A stretch of DNA of 64,000 nucleotides, taken from assembly GCA_002104945.1 (NCBI GenBank), contig MCFH01000045.1, positions 310,001 through 374,000 of the forward strand, read 5' to 3'. Made by a program: the position numbers and the translations under genes. Source of the stretch: Piromyces finnis finn (taxonomy: Eukaryota > Fungi > Neocallimastigomycota). Positions 2,068 through 64,000 of the stretch are shown here, one piece after another. A model generated the notes under the pieces. The model saw nothing but the letters and a program-made list of their open reading frames with translations. It had not been told where the DNA came from and ran no database searches. Positions within the stretch are counted from its first letter, which is position 1; every line of letters begins with the position of its first letter.

Positions 2068-4020
2068 ATGAATAGAAGAAGAAATGAAAAGAATGTGTTA
2101 AACATGAGAAACGAAATAACTTTTCATAGAGCAAATTCTAGAACACCAACTAATAAGGATATAAAAATTATTAAAAATATGTTCCCAGAATTTAATAATA
2201 ATTACATAAAAGAATTATTACAAAAAAATAATCTTAATAAAGAATTAACAATTGAGGAATTATTAAGTGAACGCTTTATTCAACAAAATTTAACTTCAGA
2301 CGATATAAAAAGAAATACTAAATTATTAGGAATATATAATGTAAAAATAAAAAAAAAATATTATCTTCCTTAATTAAAAATTAAATATTAATAAATTTTG
2401 AAATTACCAATGTTTACTAATATAAATATATTTAATAACTTTTCTATATAATAATTTTAAAATAAATCAAAATAAAATATCTTATCAATAAAAATTATAT
2501 AAAATATATTCATTAAACATATAAAGAGTAATACTGATGAACAAGAACAAGAAGTAATCATTGGTGATATCACTAATATTATGGTAAATGATATCGCAAA
2601 TAAAAAAATATGTATTCCAAAAAGAGAAACTTCTTCCAATTCCTTAATATCTACAACTACTCCAGAAGAACCAAGGGCTGATTCAATAAAAAGTAACGAT
2701 AACGAAAATTCACATCATAAAAAAAAAAAGAGAAATAGAAAATCAAAAAAAAAAGGTTCACAACTTTCAAAAGATAAAGAAGAAAATGAGGAGGAAAAAA
2801 ATATGGAAGATAAAAATAGTAAAAATTCAGATATAAAACCAACAATTCAAAGTTACTATAAATTAAGTGAAATAAAAACTATGTTTCCAAATATTTCAGA
2901 CCGTCTTTTAATTTTAACACTCCAAGTAAATAAAGGCAATATCGATGAGGTCATAAATTATTTATTAATGCATAATAATATTAAAGATGAAATTAACGAA
3001 GAAGATATATGTCGTAGTTTAGAATTACAATTAAAAAATGAACAAGGTGATCCATCTCCATGTGATGGAAATTGTATAGAACAAGGTTATCCATGCTTTA
3101 TTCATAGTCGTTTGATTTTAACCAAAGAAGACGAATATAATACCCTTTCTCTATCAGAAATTATGAAAGTGTGGAATAAATTTGAACTTATGGATCGTAA
3201 TGCTAATATTGGTTTTTCTGATCAGAACCAAGCTATTAAATACTATACTGAAGATAATGAGGAAATAGAATTTTTAATTTTGAATAGAATAAAAGAAGCG
3301 GAAAAAGCAATGACACCAGAAGAAAGAAAACATCAAGATGATGTGGAATACTTTAGAAATTGTGAAGAAAAACTTAGGAGTAGTAAATATAAATTCTTTA
3401 ATGAAGCTAGTAAAAAATATAAGTCAGGTGGTATGACTGGTTTTTCATCTGCAGCATATTATAGTGCTGAAGGTCGTCAGTTACAAGATGAAATTGAAAA
3501 GGTTAAATTATTGGCGATAAGTGCCCAAATTAGAAAGAATGAAAAGAGTTATATGCAAAACAATGGATTAAATAGTTTTTGTGGCGTTGATTTACATGGT
3601 CTCACTGTAAAAGAAGCAATTCCCTATTTGAGTGATATGTTAGTTATTTGGAAAACTGAAGTTATGAAATATAATCCAAGATTACAAAAGAAGAATGTCA
3701 CTGTTAATGCTGCTATCAATACCACAACAGAAACTTATGATTTTAGAAGTTCACAATGTAAATCTTTCTCCAAAATTGTTTCTTCAGCTCCAAAGGCAAA
3801 ACCTACCATTTACCATAATGTCAAAATTAATAAAGTAGATAGTTTAAAGAAAAGAACAAAATGTATCTATCCTAAAGTGTTTAATATTATTACTGGGCGT
3901 GGTATTCATTCAGATGCCAATATTGGTGCTCGTTTGAAACCAAGTATTTTGAACTATCTAAGAAAAAATAATTATAATTTTATTGAAGTTAATTCAGGTA
4001 GTATTGAAGTACGCCTCTAA
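2068..4020 (+). CDS. CUE2: CUE-domain / DUF1771-Smr domain protein (Cue2/N4BP2-like endonuclease); probably 2 exons
   Basis: Two CUE-like segments (IKNMFPEFNNNYIKELL, IKTMFPNISDRLLILTLQVNKGNIDEVINYLL), AYYSAEGR, and Smr motifs VDLHGL and IITGRGIHS. A phase-0 GT-AG intron at about 2341-2526 joins the two ORFs in frame. Confidence 0.8.
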
Positions 4021-4412
4021 ATGATTATTATTCTTCTTCTTCTTAATAGTAATCCTAACATAATTATGTACTCAACAATTTTAAGTTATCGATCAGCCTA
4101 TTATTTTTATAGATATAAATAGATAAATATATAATATAGTATACATTACACATTCCTTTCTTTTTTTTTTTTTTTTTCCTTTTGTTTGTTTATTTTTCGT
4201 TTTTTTGTTTTTAGATTACTAATTAAAATAATTTTAAGAATATCTTTAAATAATTTTCTAATTATATAATAGTTTTTATTTTTATATTAAATTTCAGTAA
4301 ATTTATTATTCTTTCTTTCTTTTTTACCTATGTATCGTTTTATTTTAAAAATAATTAAGTTGTAACCATTTTTTAACTTTTATAAAATTTCAGTTCATTT
4401 TCTCTCGGTATC

Positions 4413-4448
<36 letters not shown>

Positions 4449-5007
4449 GTATATAATGTATATTATATTGTTCATTATAATAATCCATAAAATAAGAACA
4501 AAATCTATTTATAAATAAGCCAACAAAAATAATAAAATAACAAAATATAAAAAAAGAATAATTTTTACTAATGATTTATATCCTATCCAAAAAATATTTT
4601 TCTTATATTGCTTTTCTTTATCTTTCTTTCTATAACCTTGTCTTTATTTATTATTATAAAATATACTCTCTTGAATGAAATAAATTATTAGCTAATATTA
4701 TGGCTATTTAAAAATTAAAAATCAAAAAAAAAAAAAAAAAAATTATTTTTATTTTTTTATTTTTTTTATTTTTATTATTTGCAAATATCTATTTTAAATA
4801 GAAATAAATTTATATATTTAATTATTATTATGATAAAATAAAAAAAATATTTGGTATAATAAATAAAAATATTTTATTTTTTCAAATTTCTATTTTTTTG
4901 TATCTTGTTGCTTTTTTTTTTTTTTTTTACTTTTTTTTAATGTAAAGCTTTTTCATTTATTAAATTTCAATCTAATATTTTCATCTTTTCTTTTTCACTT
5001 TCTTTAC

Positions 5008-10545: not shown

Positions 10546-12628
10546 TTTTCTTTTTACTTCGTATTATTTTATTATAAGATTATTTTATTTAAATTTCTGT
10601 GAATTAATATTCCTGATTTTTTTATTTTTTTTTTTTTTTAAAAAAAAAAACTACTAAAATTTAAAATTTTATTAAAAGTTATTGTTATAGAATTATTTCT
10701 TTTAAAAGAAAAATATTATATAATAAATTAATAATTTATATCTTAAATATATTTTTAATTATTTACAATAATAATATTGAAAAGTTTTTTTTTTCTCTTT
10801 TTTTAAAGATTTATATTTTTCTAATTTCAATAATTAGGAATTAATACTTTAATTAAAATTATTAATAATAATTAATTTTTTAATCCAAAGCTTTCTTACA
10901 ATAATTATTATTTCTTTAAACTCGATTCTTAATAACAATAATAATTATTATTAAGTTTTTCTTTTAAATACCGTTTTATTATTTAAATCTTCAGAAAAAA
11001 AAATAAAAATAAAAAACTTATTTATTTTACAATCTTATTATATTATACAAGCTTAAATAATAAAAAAAAAAATATATATGCTGTTAAAAAAGTCCAAAGG
11101 AAGAATTACTCCCTTTTATATAATAAATACAATTTTTTATATATTTTTTAAAAAATGATTATAATTAAAATTACATAATAATTATTAAATTAAATATTTA
11201 TTATTATTTAAATTTAAAATTTGAATAATTATTATATTAAATTAATCATATTAATTCCCATTATTTTTGATATATTAATAGTATAATTGTCATAATTGAA
11301 TAAAAGCATATAAAGATTATATATCTTTTTTATTTCATTATAATTTCCATTATCATTATCAATTATATTTATTATAATTTAAAAAAGTTTGCAATATGTT
11401 TTTATATATAATATTACTATCTTTTTTTCCAACGAATACTTCTTTATATATTATTATAAAAAAAATAATCTTTCTTTATATTATTTTCTTTTAAAAAAGG
11501 ATTATCAATAATTAATTTAATTTAAAAGAATATTAAAATTTAATATATATAAAATGAAATATTATATTGGAATATATTGTAAAATATATTATCAAATAGG
11601 ATTTTGATTTTACAATAAATAAAATTAATTTATAAATTAGAATTATAATTGAATGCTTTACATTTATCATATATTAATTAATGAATTGATACATTAAAAT
11701 TTATATAAGATATATTAAAAAAGAAAGTCAATCTATATAAATTTATATTAAATTATAATAAATAAAGTCTATATAGATTAATACATTACAACAGTATATT
11801 GCAATTAGACTTTCTGAATTTATGAAATTCAGCAGCATTAAATTGTTGTATGAAAGAAAAAAAAAAAGTCATAAATACTATACAAATAAAAATATTAAAA
11901 TAATAATTATATGGTAAAGATAAAAGAATCGCAAGCAATAGAATTGTAATAAATAATAAAACTGGAAAAAAAAATAAAATAGAAAAAAACTATTTAATTT
12001 ATATATTCAGTGTGAAGTATAATGTAACAAAAGAGAATAAAAAAATCTATTAAAAATTTTAATACTGTGGATATTCAGTAATTTAAAAAAAAAATTAAAG
12101 ATTAAAATTAATATATATTAATATATAATTTATATAAAATATAATATAATCTATTATATTCCATTATATATAATAATAATATTCAGACCTTCCGTTATTT
12201 AAAAAATTTTTGTAATTGCCGTTTTTTACTTTAATAATCTTTTTTTAAATATTGTAAATAAACTAATTTTTCTTTCAATGATTATTAATAAATAAAATAA
12301 CATGTAAAATACACTTTTTATTATTAAGCATGAAAATGTATTGTTAAAAGAAAGTTAAATTAGTAATAAAATTTTAATATAATAAAAAATAGTTGTTTCC
12401 ATTTAAAATATATATAGAAATAGTTTTGAAGGATATACAAAACTTATTATTTTTATTTACTTTTCTTTTACTGTTATTTTTATGTGTTTTTTTATTATTA
12501 TATATACAAGGATAAAGGTTTTTGAAAAATCTTTATTTCATTTATCTAAGTATTTATTTCGTTGAAAATTTTAAGTTTTCTCTTTATAAAATAAATATTA
12601 TTTATCATTTTGTTATTTTTAAATTTAT

Positions 12629-14777: not shown

Positions 14778-16583
14778 GTGTGGATAAAATACAATAATTT
14801 AATTGGTAATTTTTTAATTTTATAGAGTAGTTTTATATATATTTAAAAATTTAATTTTGTTAATCATGTTACTATACTTTTTTATACTTTTTGTTTTAGT
14901 GAGCTATTCAATAAAATAGTTTAGTATTTAAAGAATTTATTGTTTTTAATTCTTTGTTTTTACTAACAACACTATTACCATTATTATTGCTATTATCAAT
15001 GACACAATAAATTCATTCATATTCACTTTTATATAAATTATTTTTTCTTTGTATTAAAAAAAATAAGATGATTGGGCATTTACTTATTGTTATATATTTT
15101 TTTAAAAAACAATTAAGAATATTATGGAGGATGGAATTATAATTCCAAAATAGAAATAAAAACAATAATAATATGCGTATATATATAGTAATTTCATGAA
15201 TAATTTAAACTAATAAAAAAAATGATAAAAACAAAAATTAAAAAATTACAAATTGTTATATGACAATTAAAATTTAATTAGTAGCATACTAAAAGCTTTT
15301 CTCATTATAGAGGAATTTATTTAAAGGTGAAATTTTTAATTTTGAAACGAAAAAAATAAAAATAAAAATATTATTAATATATCTTATTTTAAATATTGTT
15401 TTTTATTTTAATAGTTGATAAAGATATTAATATTTAAATTCAAAAAAATTACTTCTTTTTTTTTCTTTTATTGTCGTTCATCTTGAACTACAATTAAGAA
15501 AAAGTTTTTATTGTTACACTTTATGAAATTTTTACAAAGAAAATCATTATTACTAGCCATAAATTATTGGATATATTTCATCCATGTGCCACAGTAATTA
15601 TAATGAAAATGTTCCATATAATTTTTTAATGAAAAAAATAATAGTAATTATAGTACATATAATTATTAATATAGATTAATATAGAATTTAATTAATTATT
15701 AATTAACGGACTAAATAAAAATATCAAAAAAATATTTATAAAAATAAAAAAAAAAAATTGGTATAATAAAAAAAGAAAAAAAAGTTAGAAAATAGTTAAG
15801 GTTAGAGAAATATACGATAAAAATTTTTTTACTATTTTATTGTGTTTTTGTATTATTATTTTATTTTGTTTTATTATTATCTTTGTATTTTTATTTATTA
15901 AAGTATAAATTAAATCACTTTTTTTTTTTTTTTCATCTATAATTATTTAATTTTAAAATTTTAAAAAAAAAAAAAGAAACCTACAATTCTCTTAACGTTT
16001 TATAATAAATAAAAATATTTTATTTTATTTAATACATTATAAAGTAAATAGAGGAATTTAATAAGTTTTTTTTTTTTTTTTTTTTTTACTTTTTGAATAA
16101 ATAAAATAAAATATTATTAATTATAAAAAATATAAAAAGGTATTTATTCCTTTTTATATTTTTATTGTTTTCTTTTTTATAGTTAGTATAAAAGTGTATT
16201 GAATTTTAAATTTAAATTTTTGTAATTCCATATCCTTAATTTCAAAACTAATACAAACATATAAAGCTTTTCTAATGGCAACTTAAAAAAATGTTTTATT
16301 TCATTTCATCTTATTAATTTTTCAATTATTTTTAAAAGTGGTTGTCACATAATTATTAATTATAAAAGAATATATATATTATAAAATTTTTTATTTTTTA
16401 ATTAATAATTTAAATATACATTTTAATTTTAAGAAATTAAAAATTAAAAATCGTAATCAATAGTAATATTTCATTTATAAACTATCAAATAATAATTTTT
16501 AATAATATAATATTGGAATAATTTTGAAAAATAGTTTTTTTAAGGAAAATTTAATTTTACTAAATGAATAACTTTTATTAAAT

Positions 16584-50335: not shown

Positions 50336-53300
50336 TCATTTTTTCATTTTTCTATTAGATGAATCTTGAATAACTAGTAAGAATACTTCTTCAAGTGTTG
50401 TTTGACTTACACCCCAATTAGAAATAATATTATCTGGGTTAGAGTCTAAATACTTTATAAACTCAGGAATGTATTTAAGTTGTTCTTTAGTGAAATTGTA
50501 TATCAAAGCACCTGCACTATCATCTTCTAATTTAGCACCAGGAACAAATTCTTGAACTTTATTCTTAACTTCATCAATTTTCTTTTCTTTTGCAATCATA
50601 CTAATACGATAACCAGCACCAAATTTATTTTTTAAATGTACTCCATTGCCCATTGCTTTAATATCTCCATTAGCCATAATAATAATATCATCACCAAGAG
50701 CATCAGCCTCTTCCATAGAATGTGTAGTCTAATTTTTTAAAAATTATTTAAATTGATATTTTAAAATATTTTAGATTTTTCTTTTTTATTAAGTAAATTT
50801 ATATGCTTAGCTCATACCACAATAATACATCTATTCTTTTTAAATTTTTCAATAAATTTCCAAACATATCTTCTATTAAGTGGGTCCATACCTGTTGTTG
50901 GTTCATCAAGTAAAACAACATTTGGATCACCAATAGTAGCAATAATCATAGATAAACGTCTTTTCATACTTAATTTCAATAATTAAATATTTATTTTAAA
51001 ATTATATTAATTATATTTCATAATAAATTTGTTTTTATTTTTATTTTTATTTTTTTTTTCTATGTTTTACCCTCCAGAATAAGTATTTGTCCTAGCATCT
51101 TTTACAGTCCAAAGTTTAACAGCCTTCAATCTTTGTTCTAAAATTTTATCTAAATTATCAGTAGTCACCCCCTTTAATCCAGTATATAAACGTAAATGTT
51201 CCATAGCTGTCATATCAGCATATAGAATATCATGTTGTGGGCAAATACCTAATTCTCTTTGAACTTCATTTAAATTATTTCTTAAAGTTTTACCATAAAC
51301 TGAAACATCACCACATGATGGAGGGGTTAAACCTGCCATAATATTAATTGTTGTTGATTTTCCAGCACCATTTTGACTAATTATCATATATATGTTTATA
51401 AGTTAAATAATATTATTTTATATTAAAAAAAATACATATATTATAATATATTACCCTAAGAATACAACTCTGTATCAATTTAAAAGTAATATAATTGTTA
51501 AAAAATATTAGTAATAATTAGTAAAAAGTTATTAATATCTTAATAAAAAAAAGTATAAAAAATTAATTATTGAAACTAAAAACATACACTCTATCTTTGT
51601 CGAAAGAAAGATATGAACCCTTGACTACTTCTTTTTTATTTTTTCCGCTACCAAAGCTTTTTTTTAAATTTACAACTTTTACTGGACTTTGATTATTTGA
51701 GTCGCAAGTATAATTAATATGATCTAAATAATCTGAATCAATTTTGTTTTTATCATATGTTGGAGGATATTTTTCAGTGGTATTTTTAATCCACTCATTT
51801 CCAGAACTATTTTTATTTTTCGCTCCCCAGTAAGATGGAAGTAAAAAGTAGTAAAATGGTTGGCAATTACCAAATTCATTAGGAATAACATTATCAAAGT
51901 ATAATGTTAAAATAATAAAAATTGCAATATCTAATAACATTAATAATATACATTTTCCTGGTGTGTTAAGATAAACTAAATCCAAAACCATATTAATAAA
52001 TGAATCTGCTGGAATCACTGATAAATCTTTCATACCAAATCCAGTACCCTTAACAACAGAACCAGTAATAACATTTACCGATGAACCTGATTTTGATGAA
52101 ATATCAAAATAGACTCTTCCGAAATTGAAAAATGGTAATATGGAAAAAACTATATTTTTTATATTATTCATTGTTTTAAAAATTTATTTAAGTCATATTG
52201 TTATATAAAAGTATATTAATCATATAAACTTAAAAAAGAAACTTACTATATCTAAAGATTGAATTAACAGAATTACTCCACCAAATATATGCAAGATAAG
52301 CATTTGAAAAAAGAAAAGACTGGAAAAGGAAACCGATAATTAATACAAATATACCTGAAAGAAGTATATATTATAACAATTAAAGATAAAACAATATTCC
52401 TTATTTTAAAAATAAAATTTTTATTAAAATAATAATAAAGATGTTTATAAAATAAGGATATCAGCTGAACGAGATGAATTCACAAATGTTGTAAGTAAGA
52501 ATCCTAATGTAATCATTGCAATGCCAAAAATAAAAAATAAAATAAATAATATCTATATATATAAATGTTAATTATTTAGAGTTCTCATCCATATTATTAT
52601 ATTATATTTTAAATAAATACATACAAATATGTTGGTATTTAAAAAGAAAGAATATTGAAAGAGCATTCCAAATGCAATAGTAGCTATTGTGTTAATAAAT
52701 ATAAGAACGAAGTATATAATAAACCAGCTTAACCAATAAACACTTTTATATAAACCCATCATTTCCATACAAAAACGGATTTTACTTTCTTTTTCTGCTA
52801 CAATAGTATTTAAACAGTTAATAAAAATTACCATAGCAGAACAGAAAAAGAAAACTGAACCAAGAGATGATATAACAGATTCACCAAGATTTTCTTGAGC
52901 AATTTTAGGATAATCTTTTAAATTAACATCGAAACTTGCCTTAATATTTGGATTACCATTAGCATAGCTTGCTATAATATTTTATATTTTATAAATCATT
53001 TAATATTTTATATAATATATATTTATAATTATTTTATTATTTCATTTATTAACCAATTGCTTCATCAATTCCACGAGAAACACTTAAAACTCTTGATCCT
53101 AGAGTATCAGTTTGATTTTTATTTAAAGTTGAATTATACCATATTTGATAACGATAATTTGTAATATCATTATCTTTCTTTATATCAAATAATACACCAA
53201 AAAATGTATAATTTTGGTGATTTAATGCATAATCATACATAAAATTACTATTTGGAACATGGATTACATCGTGTCTTTTAGTAACTGTATAGCTCAATTT

Positions 53301-54037
53301 TGTTTCTAAATAATTATGTATAATAAAAATAAGTTTTTTTTTTCTTTTTCTAGTAATATAAATTTTTATTAATATTATATATTATACCATCCCAGTCTTC
53401 CCATTTACTAGAATCAGTTTCCCAATTAAGTCCCATTCTTTCATTATTTTTTTCCACGTAATTTTCTAAAATTTTATCAACTTCTGAATCTCTTTGACAA
53501 ATAGCACCATCAATACAGTTAGTAAACATTAAATTTATACAATTTCCTTCTAAATTAATTGGACCCTGAAAATATAGAATAATACATTTTCAATATATAA
53601 ATATAATATTTATATGTGAATTTTTTCATAGATATTTCATACTTTGCAATTTTCAATACCACTTAGAGGATAAGACTCTGGATGTAATATTTCTTTTCCA
53701 TTTTGATTCACTGCTAATAATTGAAGTAACTCTAAAAGAATCATTACAATAAGCGGAGTTATAATCGTCATTAAAAGAGTAGATTTCCAAAATCGCAACT
53801 AATATAATAATATTGTTATTATATTAATTCAATAGTTATTTAATAAAATAATAAAAATATATCAAAATTATAAAAATATCATTTTCATACTTGTAATACA
53901 AAGTTTTTATTTAACATTATTTTTAACTGCTTTTTCCATATCGTAAACCCACTATTTTTTTTACTATCATTATTATCCCATAACATAATATCAAAATCGT
54001 CATCATCTATGTTATTTTTATTTTTATCTTCTGTCAT
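50336..54037 (-). CDS. Half-size ABCA-subfamily transporter (paralog 'A'); many exons including a U12-type intron and a 15-nt microexon
   Basis: IVAEKESKIRFCMEMMGL, YFDNVIP.EFG, Walker A GQNGAGKST, GICPQHDIL, signature YSGGMKRRLS, Walker B LLDEPTTG, THSMEEAD, SQTTLEEVF. Confidence 0.9.
51455..51469 (-). other. 15-nt microexon (AGTTGTATTCTTAGG) in ABCA paralog A
   Basis: Bounded by tacag and gtaata. It restores DRVVVFLG|QNGAGKS, colinear with NKVVALLGQNGAGKS in paralog C. Confidence 0.8.
52364..52461 (-). other. U12-type AT-AC intron (98 nt) in ABCA paralog A
   Basis: 5' end ATATCCTTAT, branch-like TCTTTAAT about 15 nt from the 3' end, 3' end TATAC. Removal gives SRSA-V-LSGIFVLIIG; retention hits TAA. 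Confidence 0.85.
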
Positions 54038-54951
54038 TTTTTATTAATATTATAACTATTATATTATAAATTGTAAAATATTAAATATATGTATCCAAAA
54101 TTTTTATTTTTTATTTAAATAGTTTAATTTTATATATTTTACAATTTTAAAAAAAAAAAAAAAAAAAATAGAAAGAAAGAAAGGAATTATTATTCCTTTA
54201 TATTCTATAAGTTCATATCTAATATACAAAGTTTAAAATAAAGATAATATATAATTTATAAAAAGTTTAAAATACCTATCTATTTTTATATCTATTTTTT
54301 AAATAATTTTTAATAATTTTTAAAGTTAAATAATAGAAATTACACTATAACGTGTAATCGTTGTTCTAAATAAACTAAATTATCCATTCTAATTTTTTCC
54401 TTAAAAAAAATTAAGTTCTTTTTTTTTTTATTAATAAAGATTTAAGAATATTTACTTTTTATTCCAGAAACTATATTAACTGATATAGTTTATCCTCAAA
54501 AATATTTCAAATATAAATAAAAAAGGAATAATTAACTTTTAATAATATATCATTAAAAAAGCATAATTTATTGAATTATTAAATTATATATATATAAATC
54601 CTCTTAAAAATTACTATTATTAGAACAAATTACAAAAAAAAGTCTAAAAATGATATCATATATCCTTATTATTGAGATTATATATGATATATGATGATGA
54701 CATAGTATTAAATAAAATATATATGAAATATTTTTATATGACTCTTATATTTTTTATGTTATATATAGTTTATGTATTATATATTGAAATAAATGTTATA
54801 TTATATCTTATGTTTATATATATTTATTTATTTATATTTGAAATTTATTATAGCTATTTTATATTTAATACAATTATTAATGAATTATTAATAATTCATT
54901 TATTTACATACATTTAATCTAATTTATTTATATACATTTAATATAACAAAT

Positions 54952-57900
54952 CTATGATGCATCAGCATCATCATCAGAAATAATACTAAGGAATACTTCT
55001 TCTAATGATGATTGTGAAATACCCCAATCAGTTATACCATATTTTTCTTTATTATTTTCTAATTCTTCGAACAGTTTAGATATTAAACCTTTTGTTGGTA
55101 TAAATTCATATATACTTGTAGATGTTAAATCACGTACTGCTTTGTATTCAGATGGTAAAAGATTAATAATAAATTCTTTTAATTCCTTATACTTTTCTGG
55201 TTGATTACTATAAGAAAGTTTAAAACCGGATCCATATAATTCTTTAAGACGTAATTGTGTAGCACAGCAACGGAGTGTTCCGTGAGACATAATACCAATA
55301 CGATGGCATAATACTTCTGCTTCCTCCATAGAATGAGTTGTAATTATGATTGTTCTGTTTTGACTAATTTCATTTAAAATACCCCAAATTAATCTTCTAA
55401 CATCCGGATCAAGACCAGTAGTTGGTTCATCTAAAAATACTAGTTTTGGATCACCAACAAGAGCAATAGCTATACTTAAACGACGTTTTTCACCTCCACT
55501 TAAACCTTTGACTTTACTGTCTCTAAAGGATTCTAAACCAACACTGGACATACTTTCTACTATTGAAGCTTCTTCTTGATCTTGTGGAATACCTTTTAAT
55601 CTAGCATAGAATAAAAGATGTTCTTCAACTGTTAAGTCATTCCAAAGAATATCATGTTGTGGACAAATACCAATACGTTTATACACTTGATCCATATCTG
55701 TTTTAACATTAAAACCAGCCAATTTTGCATATCCATTTGTTAAAGTATAAACACCAATTAAAGAATGAATCAATGTTGTCTTTCCTGCACCATTTGGACC
55801 TAATAAACCAAATACAATACCTTCTTCAACAGCAAAAGTTACACTATGAACAGCAACATGTGGTTTACCTCCTTTAACTCTTGGGGCATATTCTTTTCTA
55901 GCATTTTTAATAATTAATGGACTGTTATGATCATATTTACCACTAATAACCCTATTTCTTTCAGCTCTTACATCATCATCTTCTAAAGTTTTTGCAGCTC
56001 TCTCTTCTTCTTCTGTATAGAATGGGTTCTTATTAGCTTCGTCGGCATTTTCAATTACTATTTTGTCCTTTCCATTAAATAATTTTTTAATTCTTGATAC
56101 AATATTTAAATGCCATGGTAAATGATTACCAAATTCTTGTGGAATAACTGCATCAAAGTATAATGAAAGAAGCATAAAGATAAAGAAATCAAAAATTAAA
56201 AACATAGTAGCAGTGAATACTTTATTACCAGGAACAAAATTAAATAATTGGTATGCTGGATTTATTTTTGAAACTGAAAGAGTTGAAAGTATACTTAAAA
56301 TATAATAAAATGCAAATGGTGGCCAAATAAAATAGAAATTTGTAGTTTCAAATATTTCGATTAAACCAAGACTGAAAACAATACTAAGTAATACAATTAA
56401 AAATGACGCAATTAATGCTGTTCCATTTCTACTAAAGAAGAATGATAAAACAAAAGCCATAGCTACTTGTATATTTGCCCATATAAAGAATACAATAATT
56501 AATACAACAATCGAGGTTTTAATAAACATATTCATATTACAAATCATTCCTGCAATTATAAAGCATGCCATAGATAGCATACTTAAGCATAAATTTGTTA
56601 TATATACAGATATATAATAAGTTGATGATTTCATTCCGTTCATATTCATCATTACTAAGAATCTTTCTTCTTTTTCTTTAACTAATCCAATTACAAAAAT
56701 TGGAATTAAGAAACTAACACCCCATGGGAATAATGCAATACCAATCATGCTAGGTAAATCAATTGGTAAACCAGATTCAATATTTTCTGGGAAGGATCTA
56801 AATCCTTGAGTTATGGAAACTTTATTATCTGTTATTTTTTTAACTATAGCATTACTTGTTTCAGTTAAGAAATATGCTAATCTTTTGCCTCTTCCAGGAA
56901 AAGACATATAGGGCGTGACGTCACCACATACCTCACAACTATATAAACTAGCCAATTTTCTATTCTCACCAACAGCAATTACTAGATTGTAATTTAATTT
57001 TTCTTCATTAACATCTTTAAAATACACTACACCATAAGGCATATAATTTACACTTTTTTTAATAGCATCTTCTGTATTATCAAAAACAGATAAATCAATT
57101 TGTTGTTTTTCTTCTTCAGTGTATGAATCAAATGAAGAATTTGATAAAATTTTATTAACCCTTTTTTTCGTTCGGAATTATTTATTTATATATAAATATT
57201 TATATTGATTTATAAATTTATATTAATATAATTATTGGTTAGTTTTAAAAATACTAATTTTTTACTTTTTTTATAAAAAAAATAATGATTTAATAAAAAT
57301 ATTATAATTACAATTTTATTCTTTTAGTTAGCAAATCATCTACATCATTATCATCATCAACTTCCAAAACTTCGAAATATGGAACTCTTTCAAAAGATAA
57401 AACACCCTTAGAAAGAGAACCTATATCTAACATATAGCGAGAATAAGTATAATCTAAATAGCCTTTATTGGATAATGTATATTGATCGGAATTAATTGTT
57501 TGGAATGTTATTCCTTTTGGTCCCTCTTTACGTTCACCAATTAATGTCTTTTCAGTCACATTATGTTTATTAACAGCAATAAAACCCCATGGTCGAATTA
57601 TATTATCTGTAATATATTTCAAAATCAATGAGTCTCTATTAGCATATTGACTTATATCAAATGCTCTTTTACTTTTACTATTATTTTTATTATTAAATAT
57701 TTTTATTTGCTTAGTAATATCTTTAAGTGCATTGTATCCTTTCATCATTTCTGAAAGTTGTTTTTGTATTATGTTTGCAATATATAGATAATTTCCATTT
57801 TTTCCTTCGATATCCACGGATGGAATAAAAAGTGTATCACGATTTATATTAGCTTCATTATTTTGAGGAACAGTATCATAAGGAAATGATTCGAAATGAT

Positions 57901-58934
57901 CATTTGAACCAAACCAATATGAACATGAATCACCATTTGGGTTATAATGACAAACACGAACATCAGGATTTCCTTGTTTTTCTTGAGAACCTGTATTAGG
58001 CAAATATAATTTGCCATTATATTCATTTGAACAATATTCATATTTTTCTGTTTTAATAATATCTCTCAATAAATATTCAATTAATAAACTCAACAAAAAG
58101 GCAATAATAATCATCATTGTTGGACACACTCTATATAAGTTATTATTAGAAAAAAAATATTTAATATATTTATTTTATAGTGTTTAAGCACAATAATATA
58201 TAGAAATATAACTTACCCAACACAACCTATAGGATTAATGTTATTTTAAGTTCATTATATAATAATTATTAATAATTATTATTATAAAATATATAAAAAT
58301 AAATCTATCTTTTTTATATATAATTACATATATTTGTTCCTAATTGTCTTTTTTGAAATGATAATGTCTTTCTGAACTAAATTGAATAAAAAATTATTAT
58401 ATATATAAAATTTATAAATTATATATTTTAATTATTATGTTATTGTTGCTTCTTCTTTCTTAATATAAATTTACCATTGCTCTAACTTGAAAACTTTTTC
58501 TACGTTCTTAGTAGAAATTTTTAAAATAAAATATTATTAAAATAACAATAAAATATATTATTATTATTAGTATTATTTTTTATTATATATATTCATTATT
58601 ATTAAAAAAAAATAGAAATATTTTTTTAATATGATAGCAAACCTGGTGGAGGTAATGAATTTCTTGTAGATGTTCTTGATATATTTGATTTTACTCTTTC
58701 AAGAGAAGTAGAGTTTTTACTTGCATTTTCGGTAATATTGATTGATTGAGATCGTAAAACTCCTTCTTTATTAATTTCTTTATTTGAAATACCAAATTCC
58801 TCTTTAAACTCTACTGCATTTTCATTACCTTTAATATTTTCTTTTTCAACTGCAATACCACTTTCATTGGCACTATTATCATTCGTAGTGTCACTCCTTT
58901 CTTCAATAATCATTAACTGTTTTTCATCTTCCAT
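54952..58934 (-). CDS. Half-size ABCA-subfamily transporter (paralog 'B', different subtype); 6 exons including a 10-nt microexon and a 2.2-kb terminal exon
   Basis: FQKRQLGTNIC|CVG|VCP, LVKEKEERFLVMMNMNGM, YFDAVIPQEFG, GPNGAGKTT, LSGGEKRRLS, FLDEPTTG, THSMEEAE, SQSSLEEVF. Confidence 0.92.
58217..58226 (-). other. 10-nt microexon (GTTGTGTTGG) in ABCA paralog B
   Basis: Bounded by ctatag and gtaagt. It connects a phase-1 donor to a phase-2 acceptor, giving TNICCVGVCP. Confidence 0.8.
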
Positions 58935-60269: not shown

Positions 60270-60510
60270 AATCTTCATTGGTTACGCTGGCCTTATTGAC
60301 CTGTTTCATTTTTTAAGAATTGACGTTCCTGGTCATTAAATATTGTTGGCTAATAATATAAGGCATTATTATGGTTAGAAGTTTCACATTGGATGTCAAA
60401 AATAGAAATAATTTAACAATAACAATTCAAGGGAATGAATTGTTATTGTTAAACTTTCTTCCAGAAAGGAATTTAATTATCCCTTACCCACACTAAAATA
60501 ATTATACTCG
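60270..60510. ncRNA. Candidate structured non-coding element (identity and strand unknown)
   Basis: Locally GC-richer, with a perfect 18-bp hairpin at 60412-60453, a 6-bp hairpin at 60454-60468, and nested pairings GCCTTAT/ATAAGGC and TGACC/GGTCA. Confidence 0.35.
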
Positions 60511-61165
60511 GTAAATAAATTATTAAAATTGTTATTAAGTATATTTCATATTTTCTCTAATTAATATTTTATATATAGTATAAATAAATTTTAAAAAACA
60601 TAATATTATACATTATCAAAATACTGTAAAAAAAAAAAAAAAAAAAGTTACCACAAATGTTTTTAATAAAACCTAAAAATAAATTAACTTTTCCTTTTAT
60701 AAATTTAATAAATAATACATTTATTTATTCATTTATTTATATATTTTAGTAAATTTTTAATAATTAATAATGTAATCCTCTTTTATTTTTTATTCTTGTG
60801 TAAAAGAAAAAAAAATAAAAATATATTTATAGATTGATAATGATATAATATATAATTTCTTTTTTTTTTATCTTTTTATATTAAATGTTATAATTGTTAT
60901 TTTTGATTAATTCAATTAATAATTATATTATTTGCTTATAATTAATTCAATTATAAATAAATATATTTTTCTTTTAATGAATTGAATTACAGTTATTTTT
61001 TATTGTTATTTTTAATAAATTGATAAATATGATATTATGAAAATTGATAATATTATTATTAATAATTGATTATTTAAATTGAACTTTTTATAATTATTTG
61101 TTTTCTTTTTATCGTTTAATACATGTATATAAAAAGTATTTATAATAATATATTTTTAAATAGTA

Positions 61166-64000
61166 TTATTCTTCTTTAAATTTACGGTTTGAATCACTGT
61201 GAATGACATATAAAAATACTTCTTCAAGAGTAGTTTGACTCATACCCCAAGTATTAACATAACCATCTGGATTTTCATCTAAATACTTTACAAACTCAGA
61301 AATATAATTTAATTGTTCTTCATTGAAATCATAAATTAATGCACCAGCACTATCATCAGCAAGATGAATACCAGGAACCATATTTTTAGCAATTAATTTA
61401 AAGGCTTTAAGATTTTCTACATCAACTAAAACACTAATACGATAACCATTTCCAAATTTGTTCTTCAAATGAACACTATTACCAATAGCTTTAATTGTAC
61501 CTTTACTCATAATAACAATATCATCACCGAGAGCATCAGCTTCTTCCATAGAATGTGTTGTTAAAAGAACACATCTATCCTTCTTAAATTCTTCAATAAA
61601 TCTCCAGACATAACGACGATTAACAGGATCCATACCTGTTGTTGGTTCATCAAGCAAAATAACATTTGGATCACCAATTGTAGCAATAATCATCGATAAA
61701 CGTCTCTTCATTCCTCCGGAATATGTTCCAGCTCTAGCATCTTTAACTGTATACAATTGAACTGCCTTTAATCTATTAATAAGAATTTCTTCTAATTCAG
61801 GACAATTTTTAATACCTTTAATACCGGAATAAAGGCGTAAATGCTCCATTGCACTCAAATCTTTGTAGAGAATATCGTGTTGAGGACAAATACCAAGCTC
61901 TGATTGAACAGCAGATGGATTCTTTCTTACACTTTTATTACAAACTAAAATATCACCTTTAGTTGGTGGAGATAAACCAGAAATAATATTCATAGTTGTG
62001 GATTTACCAGCACCATTTTGTCCTAATAATGCTACAACCTTATTTTTTCCAATTGACAAGCATGAATTTCTAACAGCAACCTTTTTCTTCAAACCTCTTC
62101 CATATACTTTACGGAGATTAATGACTTTAACTGGATCATTATTTTCTGGGTTATATGTGTATTTATAATGATCTTGAACGTCATCGTCCAATTCTTCAAT
62201 ATTAATTTTTGATGGATACTTCTTTTGAGTCTTCAATAACCAATCTCTATTATTAATATCTTTATTACTATTAAACCAATATGATGGGAGTAAGAAATAA
62301 TATATAGGTTTTCTATTTCCATATTCATTAGAAATAATATTATCAAAATATATAGTCAAAACTAAATACATAACAATATTTCCAAGCATGTAATATAAAG
62401 CATGAGATGTTGGTTCCATATGTTCAAGATTTAAAACATAGGATAATTCGTCACCTTGTTTAACAGATAAGTCATTCCAATGAAATCCCTTTCCTTTAAC
62501 TACTGTATTGGTAATATAATTATATGTGTTACTAGAAAGGTAATTTATATCAACATATAACTTTCCAAAATTGAAAAATGGAATAAAAATCGAGAAAACT
62601 AATGACGCATTTAAAAATACAACAATTTATTAGTTACTATCTGTTTAAATTAAATAATTATATTTATTAAATAAAAATAATATATTACGTTTTCTAATAT
62701 ATTGTGGAACTTTATCACTCCACCATATATATGTGAGATAACTATCAGTAAACAAAACCGATTGGAATAAGAAACCAATAATCAATATAGATATACCTAT
62801 AAGAAGTATGAATCAAGTTAAGAAATCAAAATATAATATACTATAAATTATAATAATATTTTTAACTTTAAAATATATAAAAAGGATATCAGCTGTCTTA
62901 GATTTATTAACAAATGTAGTAATGAATATAGCAATAGCACCCATAGCAAGTCCAAATAAAAAGTATGTAAGCAACAAAACCTATTTTATTGTTTAAAATT
63001 AATAAATAGGTTTTTTATATTAATATACTATGTATATCTTTTGTCTGTTTGTTTATTTTGCTTTTTTTATTTACTTTTGTTTTTGTTATTTAAATAAATA
63101 AATATAAAAAAAATAAACTACTTACAAAGAAGTTAGTATTAGTAAAGCAACTGTATCCAAATAATTTACCAAAAAGAATAGTAAAGATAGTATTTAAAAA
63201 GAAATAAATAACATATATAACAATCCAACTAAGCCAATAAACACTTTGTTTTAATCCCATCATTTCCATACTGAAACGAATTTTGCTTTCTTTTTCTGAA
63301 ACAACTGTACTAAGAATATTGATGAAAATAGTCATTGAAACACAAAAGAAAACCATAGGACCACAAGTTGCAACAACAACATCTTCATAGCCATTTAATG
63401 GAGGTATTGGAAAATCTTTAAGGTTTATACCAAGTTGAGGTCTGATATTTGAATCACCATTAGCATATTTAACTATTGTATTTATATAAATAATAATTAT
63501 ATATTAATAAATAATTATTAATACTTGAGTTTAATAAATATTAAAATAAAAAAAATTTTCTACTAACTAATGGCTTCATCAATACCACGAGCTACGCTAG
63601 CTAATCTAGAGCCAAAAATATCAGTATTATTATAATTAGAAGTTGAATTAAACCATAATTGATAACGATAATTGGTAATGTTTGCTTCTTTTTTAACATC
63701 GAAAACAATACCGAAATTAGTAATGTTTTGATGATTTAAAGCATAATTATATATAAAATCACTATTTGGAACATGAACTACATCATATTTTTTTTCAATA
63801 TTATAATTTAATTTATCATCTATAAGTAATAATAAGTAATAATAATAATAAGTATTTTTAATTATTTGATAATATATAATTAATAGCACTTTAATAGTAA
63901 TTCAATATTACTTTCCCAATTATCCCATTTGTTTGAATCGGATTCCCATTTAATATTCATACGATCATTATTTGTTTGAACAAAGTTTGAGATAATTTCA
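61166..64000 (-). CDS. Half-size ABCA-subfamily transporter (paralog 'C', close paralog of A); 5' end lies beyond the window
   Basis: VVSEKESKIRFSMEMMGL, YFDNIISNEYG, GQNGAGKST, YSGGMKRRLS, LLDEPTTG, THSMEEAD, SQTTLEEVF. Shares 5' intron positions with paralog A. Confidence 0.92.
62806..62889 (-). other. U12-type AT-AC intron (84 nt) in ABCA paralog C
   Basis: 5' end ATATCCTTTTT, branch site TTTCTTAAC (62825-62817) ending 11 nt before the 3' end CATAC. Removal gives SKTA-V-LIGISILIIG in frame. Confidence 0.9.

Follow-up and report, generated by a model that had tools for sequence, protein, structure and literature searches.

Minor-class (U12-type) AT-AC introns, known from animals, plants and early-diverging fungi, are marked by ATATCCTT as the 5' splice site and by a branch site resembling TCCTTAAC that lies 10-15 nt before the 3' end; they end in AC, lack a polypyrimidine tract, lie in phase 1 and keep their position across paralogs and genera. 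The introns described here, found in ABCA transporter genes of the anaerobic gut fungus Piromyces finnis and its relatives, share this architecture; they differ in having an extremely AT-rich interior (7-12% GC) and, in the A-type genes of P. finnis and Neocallimastix californiae, a degenerate branch-site motif 16-18 nt from the 3' end.

At the level of species, the closest precedent is the catalogue of Larue & Roy 2023 (PMC10639083), which lists both minor introns and minor snRNAs for P. finnis and N. californiae, reports no convincing support for minor splicing in Ascomycota or Basidiomycota, and finds minor introns to be biased away from phase 0. This catalogue corresponds to the present case in species, intron class and kind of evidence (minor-type signals scored on annotated introns, together with minor snRNAs), but it does not discuss ABCA genes, and the match is one of species and class. 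Minor snRNAs have also been reported for the Spizellomyces and Batrachochytrium lineages (PMC2396436). A literature search linking U12-type introns with ABC transporters returned nothing relevant, and neither did one on the minor spliceosome in Neocallimastigomycota by name, P. finnis being covered in Larue & Roy 2023 (PMC10639083). An earlier note on this DNA had inferred that the organism has a working minor spliceosome, and had left open whether this was already catalogued for the taxon. The inference agrees with the minor introns and snRNAs reported in PMC10639083 and is thus sound, though not new; the question is answered at species level by the same paper, and for the junction itself by public gene models that carry it. 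Both minor splicing in P. finnis and the AT-AC junctions discussed below are therefore already known, the former from the literature and the latter from public annotation.

The window that we analysed, a stretch of 64,000 nucleotides with a GC content of about 19%, contains in its last 14 kb three half-size ABCA transporter genes, here called A, B and C, all on the minus strand and all with Pfam matches to ABC2_membrane_3 and ABC_tran. The order typical of an ABCA half-transporter (ABC2_membrane_3 followed by one ABC_tran) was found in the Pfam matches both on open reading frames of the window and on the full-length 905-aa protein of paralog C. This paralog is P. finnis BCR36DRAFT_359698 (905 aa; C-terminal open reading frame 100% identical), and its coding region in the window extends over 61166..64000 (minus strand), with the CDS end at 61166, the transcript 3' end near 60767 and about 129 N-terminal residues beyond the window end. 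Paralog A (BCR36DRAFT_334597; coding region 50336..54037, minus strand; 904 aa, 11 introns) is 57% identical to C and lies with it on the same 454-kb public contig. Paralog B (58826..54955, minus strand) belongs to another ABCA subfamily, made up of proteins of about 1120 aa, and is about 30% identical to A and C.

The intron of principal interest lies in paralog C at 62889..62806 (minus strand), is 84 nt long and in phase 1, and was delimited from the sequence and from a joint in RNA. We consider it very probable that this is a genuine U12-type AT-AC intron of a half-size ABCA transporter gene in P. finnis, given its 5' splice site, its branch site and the spacing of that site, the lack of a polypyrimidine tract, the use of the AT-AC ends in mRNA and the conservation of its position. 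Its flanks on the minus strand read ...AAG ACA GCT G|ATATCCTTTTT ... GATTTCTTAACTTGATTCATAC|TT CTT ATA GGT. The 5' splice site ATATCCTTT (62889..62881, minus strand) fits the U12-type consensus [AG]TATCCTT, matching the U12 consensus at 9 of 9 positions, and the branch-site motif TTCTTAAC (62824..62817, minus strand) matches the consensus TCCTTAAC at 7 of 8. Between the motif and the 3' end of the intron are 11 nt, the presumed branch A at 62818 being 12 nt from that end, and the terminal AC (62807..62806, minus strand) is placed by an RNA joint that is unshiftable. The last 11 nt of the intron are TTGATTCATAC, and no polypyrimidine tract is present between the branch site and the AC, an absence that is weakly diagnostic since the genome has about 19% GC. 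Phase 1 also suits a minor intron, as this class tends to avoid phase 0.

After splicing, the paralog C transcript contains ...KSKTAVLIGISILIIGFLFQ... and its frame stays open, reading ...TTFVNKSKTAVLIGISILIIGFLFQ.... The exon upstream of the intron (62890..62980, minus strand; its boundary with the preceding GT-AG intron has a 2-nt alignment ambiguity) ends in ...KSKTA plus the G of a split Val codon, and the exon downstream (62689..62805, minus strand) begins TT CTT ATA GGT, or (V)LIG.... The four other introns of paralog C in the window (63911-63820, 63567-63473, about 63125-62981 and 62688-62599, minus strand) are all GT-AG. The RNA shows that the pre-mRNA is cut at G|ATATCC and AC|TT, and this restores the conserved transmembrane segment ...TAVLIGI.... 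Going by what is established for minor splicing in general, recognition of the 5' splice site (ATATCCTT) and of the branch site (TTCTTAAC) would fall to the U11/U12 di-snRNP, and the catalytic step to U4atac/U6atac.U5. An Rfam scan of the 64-kb window alone found no minor snRNA.

Evidence from RNA fixes the junction of paralog C to the nucleotide. Four RNA runs from one organism contained 55-76% of the sampled words of positions 60500-64000, and the corresponding share for paralog A in the same runs was 0.56-0.60. In Logan transcript contigs of runs X2, X3 and X4, which represent three samples from two studies and are single contigs of 3190, 2775 and 2707 nt, respectively, position 62805 is joined directly to 62890 in each run. 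The skipped 84 nt have the ends GT..AT on the plus strand, that is, AT..AC on the coding strand, and the 62805|62890 joint cannot be slid because no letters fit both sides ('both' = 0). The earlier note had placed an AT-AC intron at 62889..62806 and had named the RNA junction 62889>62806 as a check; the intron is borne out by the exact joint in transcript contigs of three RNA runs, and the junction, when sought in assembled contigs, was found as predicted in X2, X3 and X4.

The contigs over the AT-AC site of paralog C have high depth and are fully spliced ones only. Among the transcript contigs of the RNA runs no intron-retaining contig was seen for this gene, with the proviso that assembled contigs drop rare isoforms and that low-level retention, or occasional splicing to the in-frame AG 9 nt further on, could escape them; the depth in the intron bins is that of their exon share alone, and therefore no intron-retaining contig is present. 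The paralog C intron is a constitutive, ordinary minor intron, and the suggestion of the earlier note that minor splicing may be rate-limiting for the A- and C-type subunits, though not for B, finds no support. As a side observation, the X2 and X3 contigs match the window exactly, while the X4 contig has four differences from it (61307 A>T, 62078 A>G, 62132 T>A and 62759 C>T), which could reflect another isolate or allele of the same organism.

Introns at the same codon were found in paralog A and in relatives from two other genera. In paralog A, the AT-AC intron lies at 52461..52364 (minus strand; 98 nt, phase 1), with the 5' splice site ATATCCTTA and a branch-site-like TCTTTAAT 16 nt from the AC, and the same exon-exon join is seen in a 3058-nt uninterrupted JGI mRNA contig (L012) from an 83%-identical relative (...TCAGCTG|TTCTTTCAGG...). 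In Anaeromyces robustus, both orthologues carry the intron: that of C at 2403..2535 of locus L001 (ATATCCTTTTT...TCCTTAAT, 11 nt to the AC) and that of A at 2522..2620 of locus L007 (MCFG01000070.1; GCCTTAAT, 11 nt to the AC). An A-type gene of N. californiae has it at 4410..4498 of locus L009 (MCOG01000188.1; TCCATAAT, 18 nt to the AC). The 5' element ATATCCTT is invariant in all five of these homologous introns (five genes from three genera, Piromyces, Anaeromyces and Neocallimastix), and a branch-site-like motif lies 11-18 nt from the AC throughout. The weaker, degenerate motifs are those of P. finnis A (TCTTTAAT) and the N. californiae A-type gene (TCCATAAT), at 16-18 nt; the classical optimum for the branch site is 10-15 nt from the 3' end, and these A-type copies fall outside it.

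The interiors of the five introns are 31-53% identical, as against 68-88% for the flanking exons, and we judge the interior identity to be about the background for such AT-rich sequence. The earlier note had described an AT-AC intron at the same phase-1 position in paralog A, with a diverged interior, and had argued that the signals are under selection. The first of these statements holds at the coordinates given above; as to the second, the signals are conserved at one codon in five genes and three genera while the interiors drift.

It is established that AT-AC termini alone leave the type of spliceosome undecided, and T-rich 3' regions are found everywhere in a genome of about 19% GC; both points would allow for a U2-type (major-spliceosome) intron, that is, one with AT-AC ends and major-type internal signals. 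Introns of that kind have a GTRAGT-like 5' site in which A replaces G, and carry neither ATATCCTT nor a TCCTTAAC branch site. Because the U2-type AT-AC class is without both of these signals, whereas here the two U12 motifs occur at the right spacing and have been kept in five homologous introns despite drifting interiors, we regard a U2-type origin as very unlikely. A different doubt attaches to the donor motif, which might be a chance match in AT-rich DNA with no special meaning for splicing: the window contains 6 copies of the 8-mer ATATCCTT, where 5.9 would be expected. With these counts, and with the other four matches being non-coding, the donor motif alone was rejected as evidence. Those four (2155-2162 and 12429-12436 on the minus strand, 16230-16237 and 54660-54667 on the plus strand) lie in non-coding, stop-rich sequence, have no suitably placed branch-site motif, and are chance occurrences and not minor introns. 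The remaining two fall on the same codon, in phase 1, of A and C, with a branch-site motif 12-16 nt before the AC. What speaks against chance for the paralog C site is that it belongs to an expressed and precisely excised intron that recurs at one codon across paralogs and three genera, always accompanied by a branch-site motif, and the probability that we assign to coincidence is negligible.

The choice of acceptor also had to be weighed. Paralogs A and C of P. finnis each have an AG in frame 9 nt beyond the AC (at 62797 in paralog C), and its use as the true acceptor would yield a 93-nt AT-AG intron that removes VLI; in addition, several GT-AG pairs near the paralog C intron keep the frame. 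On the latter point the earlier note, which had found no such pair nearby, was not strictly correct, 62940..62797 and 62841..62797 being examples. However, the acceptor at 62806 is the one used in each of the three transcript contigs, an AG is missing from the corresponding place in the A. robustus C orthologue, and the residues VL[IS] that would be lost are conserved and contiguous in homologues, paralog B encoding their equivalents without an intron in the uninterrupted stretch SRNGTALIASF (56433..56401, minus strand). More broadly, the junction is fixed by the motif TA[VI]L[IV]GI, which about 110 fungal homologues conserve as a contiguous stretch. The AT-AG and GT-AG alternatives are thus already contradicted as the main isoform of paralog C, and we hold a true acceptor at the downstream AG, or a nearby GT-AG pair, to be less probable even than a U2-type intron. 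The in-frame GT-AG pairs were set aside as candidates; their use would cost the protein conserved transmembrane residues or add 16 residues that are not conserved, and the RNA contigs do not show them.

The public models of C and A include the junction peptides KTAVLIGISIL (C) and RSAVLSGIFVL (A; model P0291), and because both models include these peptides, the AT-AC junctions are already annotated. What the present analysis adds is mildly new: an age for the intron that precedes the A/C duplication, the lack of the intron in the orthologues sampled outside Neocallimastigomycota, and faulty gene models in two relatives. As a case of minor splicing in an anaerobic gut fungus, the paralog C intron is clean and validated by RNA, with little import beyond bookkeeping.

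A maximum-likelihood tree was used to place the intron in the history of these genes. All Neocallimastigomycota A/C-type proteins group together (100/100), and the first split within Neocallimastigomycota separates an A clade from a C superclade (both 100/100). Intron-bearing genes are found on both sides of the A/C split, and therefore the intron is older than the A/C duplication; the duplication in turn is older than the split between Piromyces, Anaeromyces and Neocallimastix. The C clade has a 17-member sister group inside the C superclade, and two genes of this group have no intron at the site, Piromyces sp. E2 PIROE2DRAFT_20971 and a gene of N. lanati; these absences are precise losses. 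The ancestral gene thus already had the AT-AC intron when A and C arose by duplication; Piromyces and Anaeromyces have retained it, signals included, in both lineages, Neocallimastix has retained it in an A-type gene, and it was precisely lost in the sister clade of the C group. The interest of this history is that one minor intron can be dated to before a duplication common to three genera and followed to its precise loss in a sister clade.

The C-like gene of Piromyces sp. E2 (locus L008, KZ150989.1) lacks the AT-AC intron (alignment column 1185) and also the GT-AG intron next to it on the upstream side (column 1156), with the flanking introns kept. This double absence is the pattern expected of loss via a partial cDNA copy.

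Comparable genes outside the phylum are the fungal half-size ABCA transporters of chytrids and Mortierellomycotina (annotated as 'ATP-binding cassette sub-family A member 1'), which share the ABC2_membrane_3 and ABC_tran domains and a length of about 900 aa with the Neocallimastigomycota A/C proteins, and are 40-48% identical to them. The Spizellomyces gene has five intron positions in common with the Neocallimastigomycota genes (columns 597, 670, 1033, 1237 and 1703). The Neocallimastigomycota genes differ by extra introns at columns 819, 1156 and 1185 (the AT-AC intron), which are absent in the sampled outgroups; at the AT-AC site itself, 4 of the 4 non-Neocallimastigomycota orthologues examined (Spizellomyces, Batrachochytrium salamandrivorans, Glomus cerebriforme and Podila verticillata) have no intron. 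Two histories would account for this absence: the intron was gained on the stem of Neocallimastigomycota, or it was lost several times in other lineages. Gain of minor introns is thought to be extremely rare outside Physarum, and we consider a lineage-specific gain of this U12-type intron, on the Neocallimastigomycota stem and before the A/C duplication, to be possible but rather doubtful. If true, so rare an event would be of moderate interest for studies of intron evolution.

The non-fungal loci that could be reached for dating were intron-poor, comprising a pseudoscorpion gene and an intronless ENA contig (L011). The former, the ABCA3 gene of Cordylochernes scorpioides (L010, CP092864.1), has five introns only, none of them between residues 21 and 950. 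With a single intron in its first 950 codons, it is unusually intron-poor for an arachnid ABCA gene. The other top traceable non-fungal homologues came from transcriptomes or from assembly contigs and gave no genomic locus suitable for intron dating.

Gene models of the A-type orthologues in two relatives depart from the expected structure at the AT-AC intron. The public model of the A. robustus gene (P0293) is missing 6 residues there (...NSSR------IFVL...), and that of the N. californiae gene (P0294, 768 aa) has no alignment across the region. These faulty models look like annotation failing on a non-GT-AG intron, and they indicate that annotation pipelines still break on this AT-AC intron in relatives of P. 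finnis.

The A/B/C gene cluster is itself at least partly conserved. In P. finnis, B lies between A and C; in A. robustus, the A and C orthologues adjoin on one contig (184829-191291 and 191617-196744); and in Piromyces sp. E2, a B-type and a C-like gene have consecutive locus tags (20970 and 20971) on one contig.
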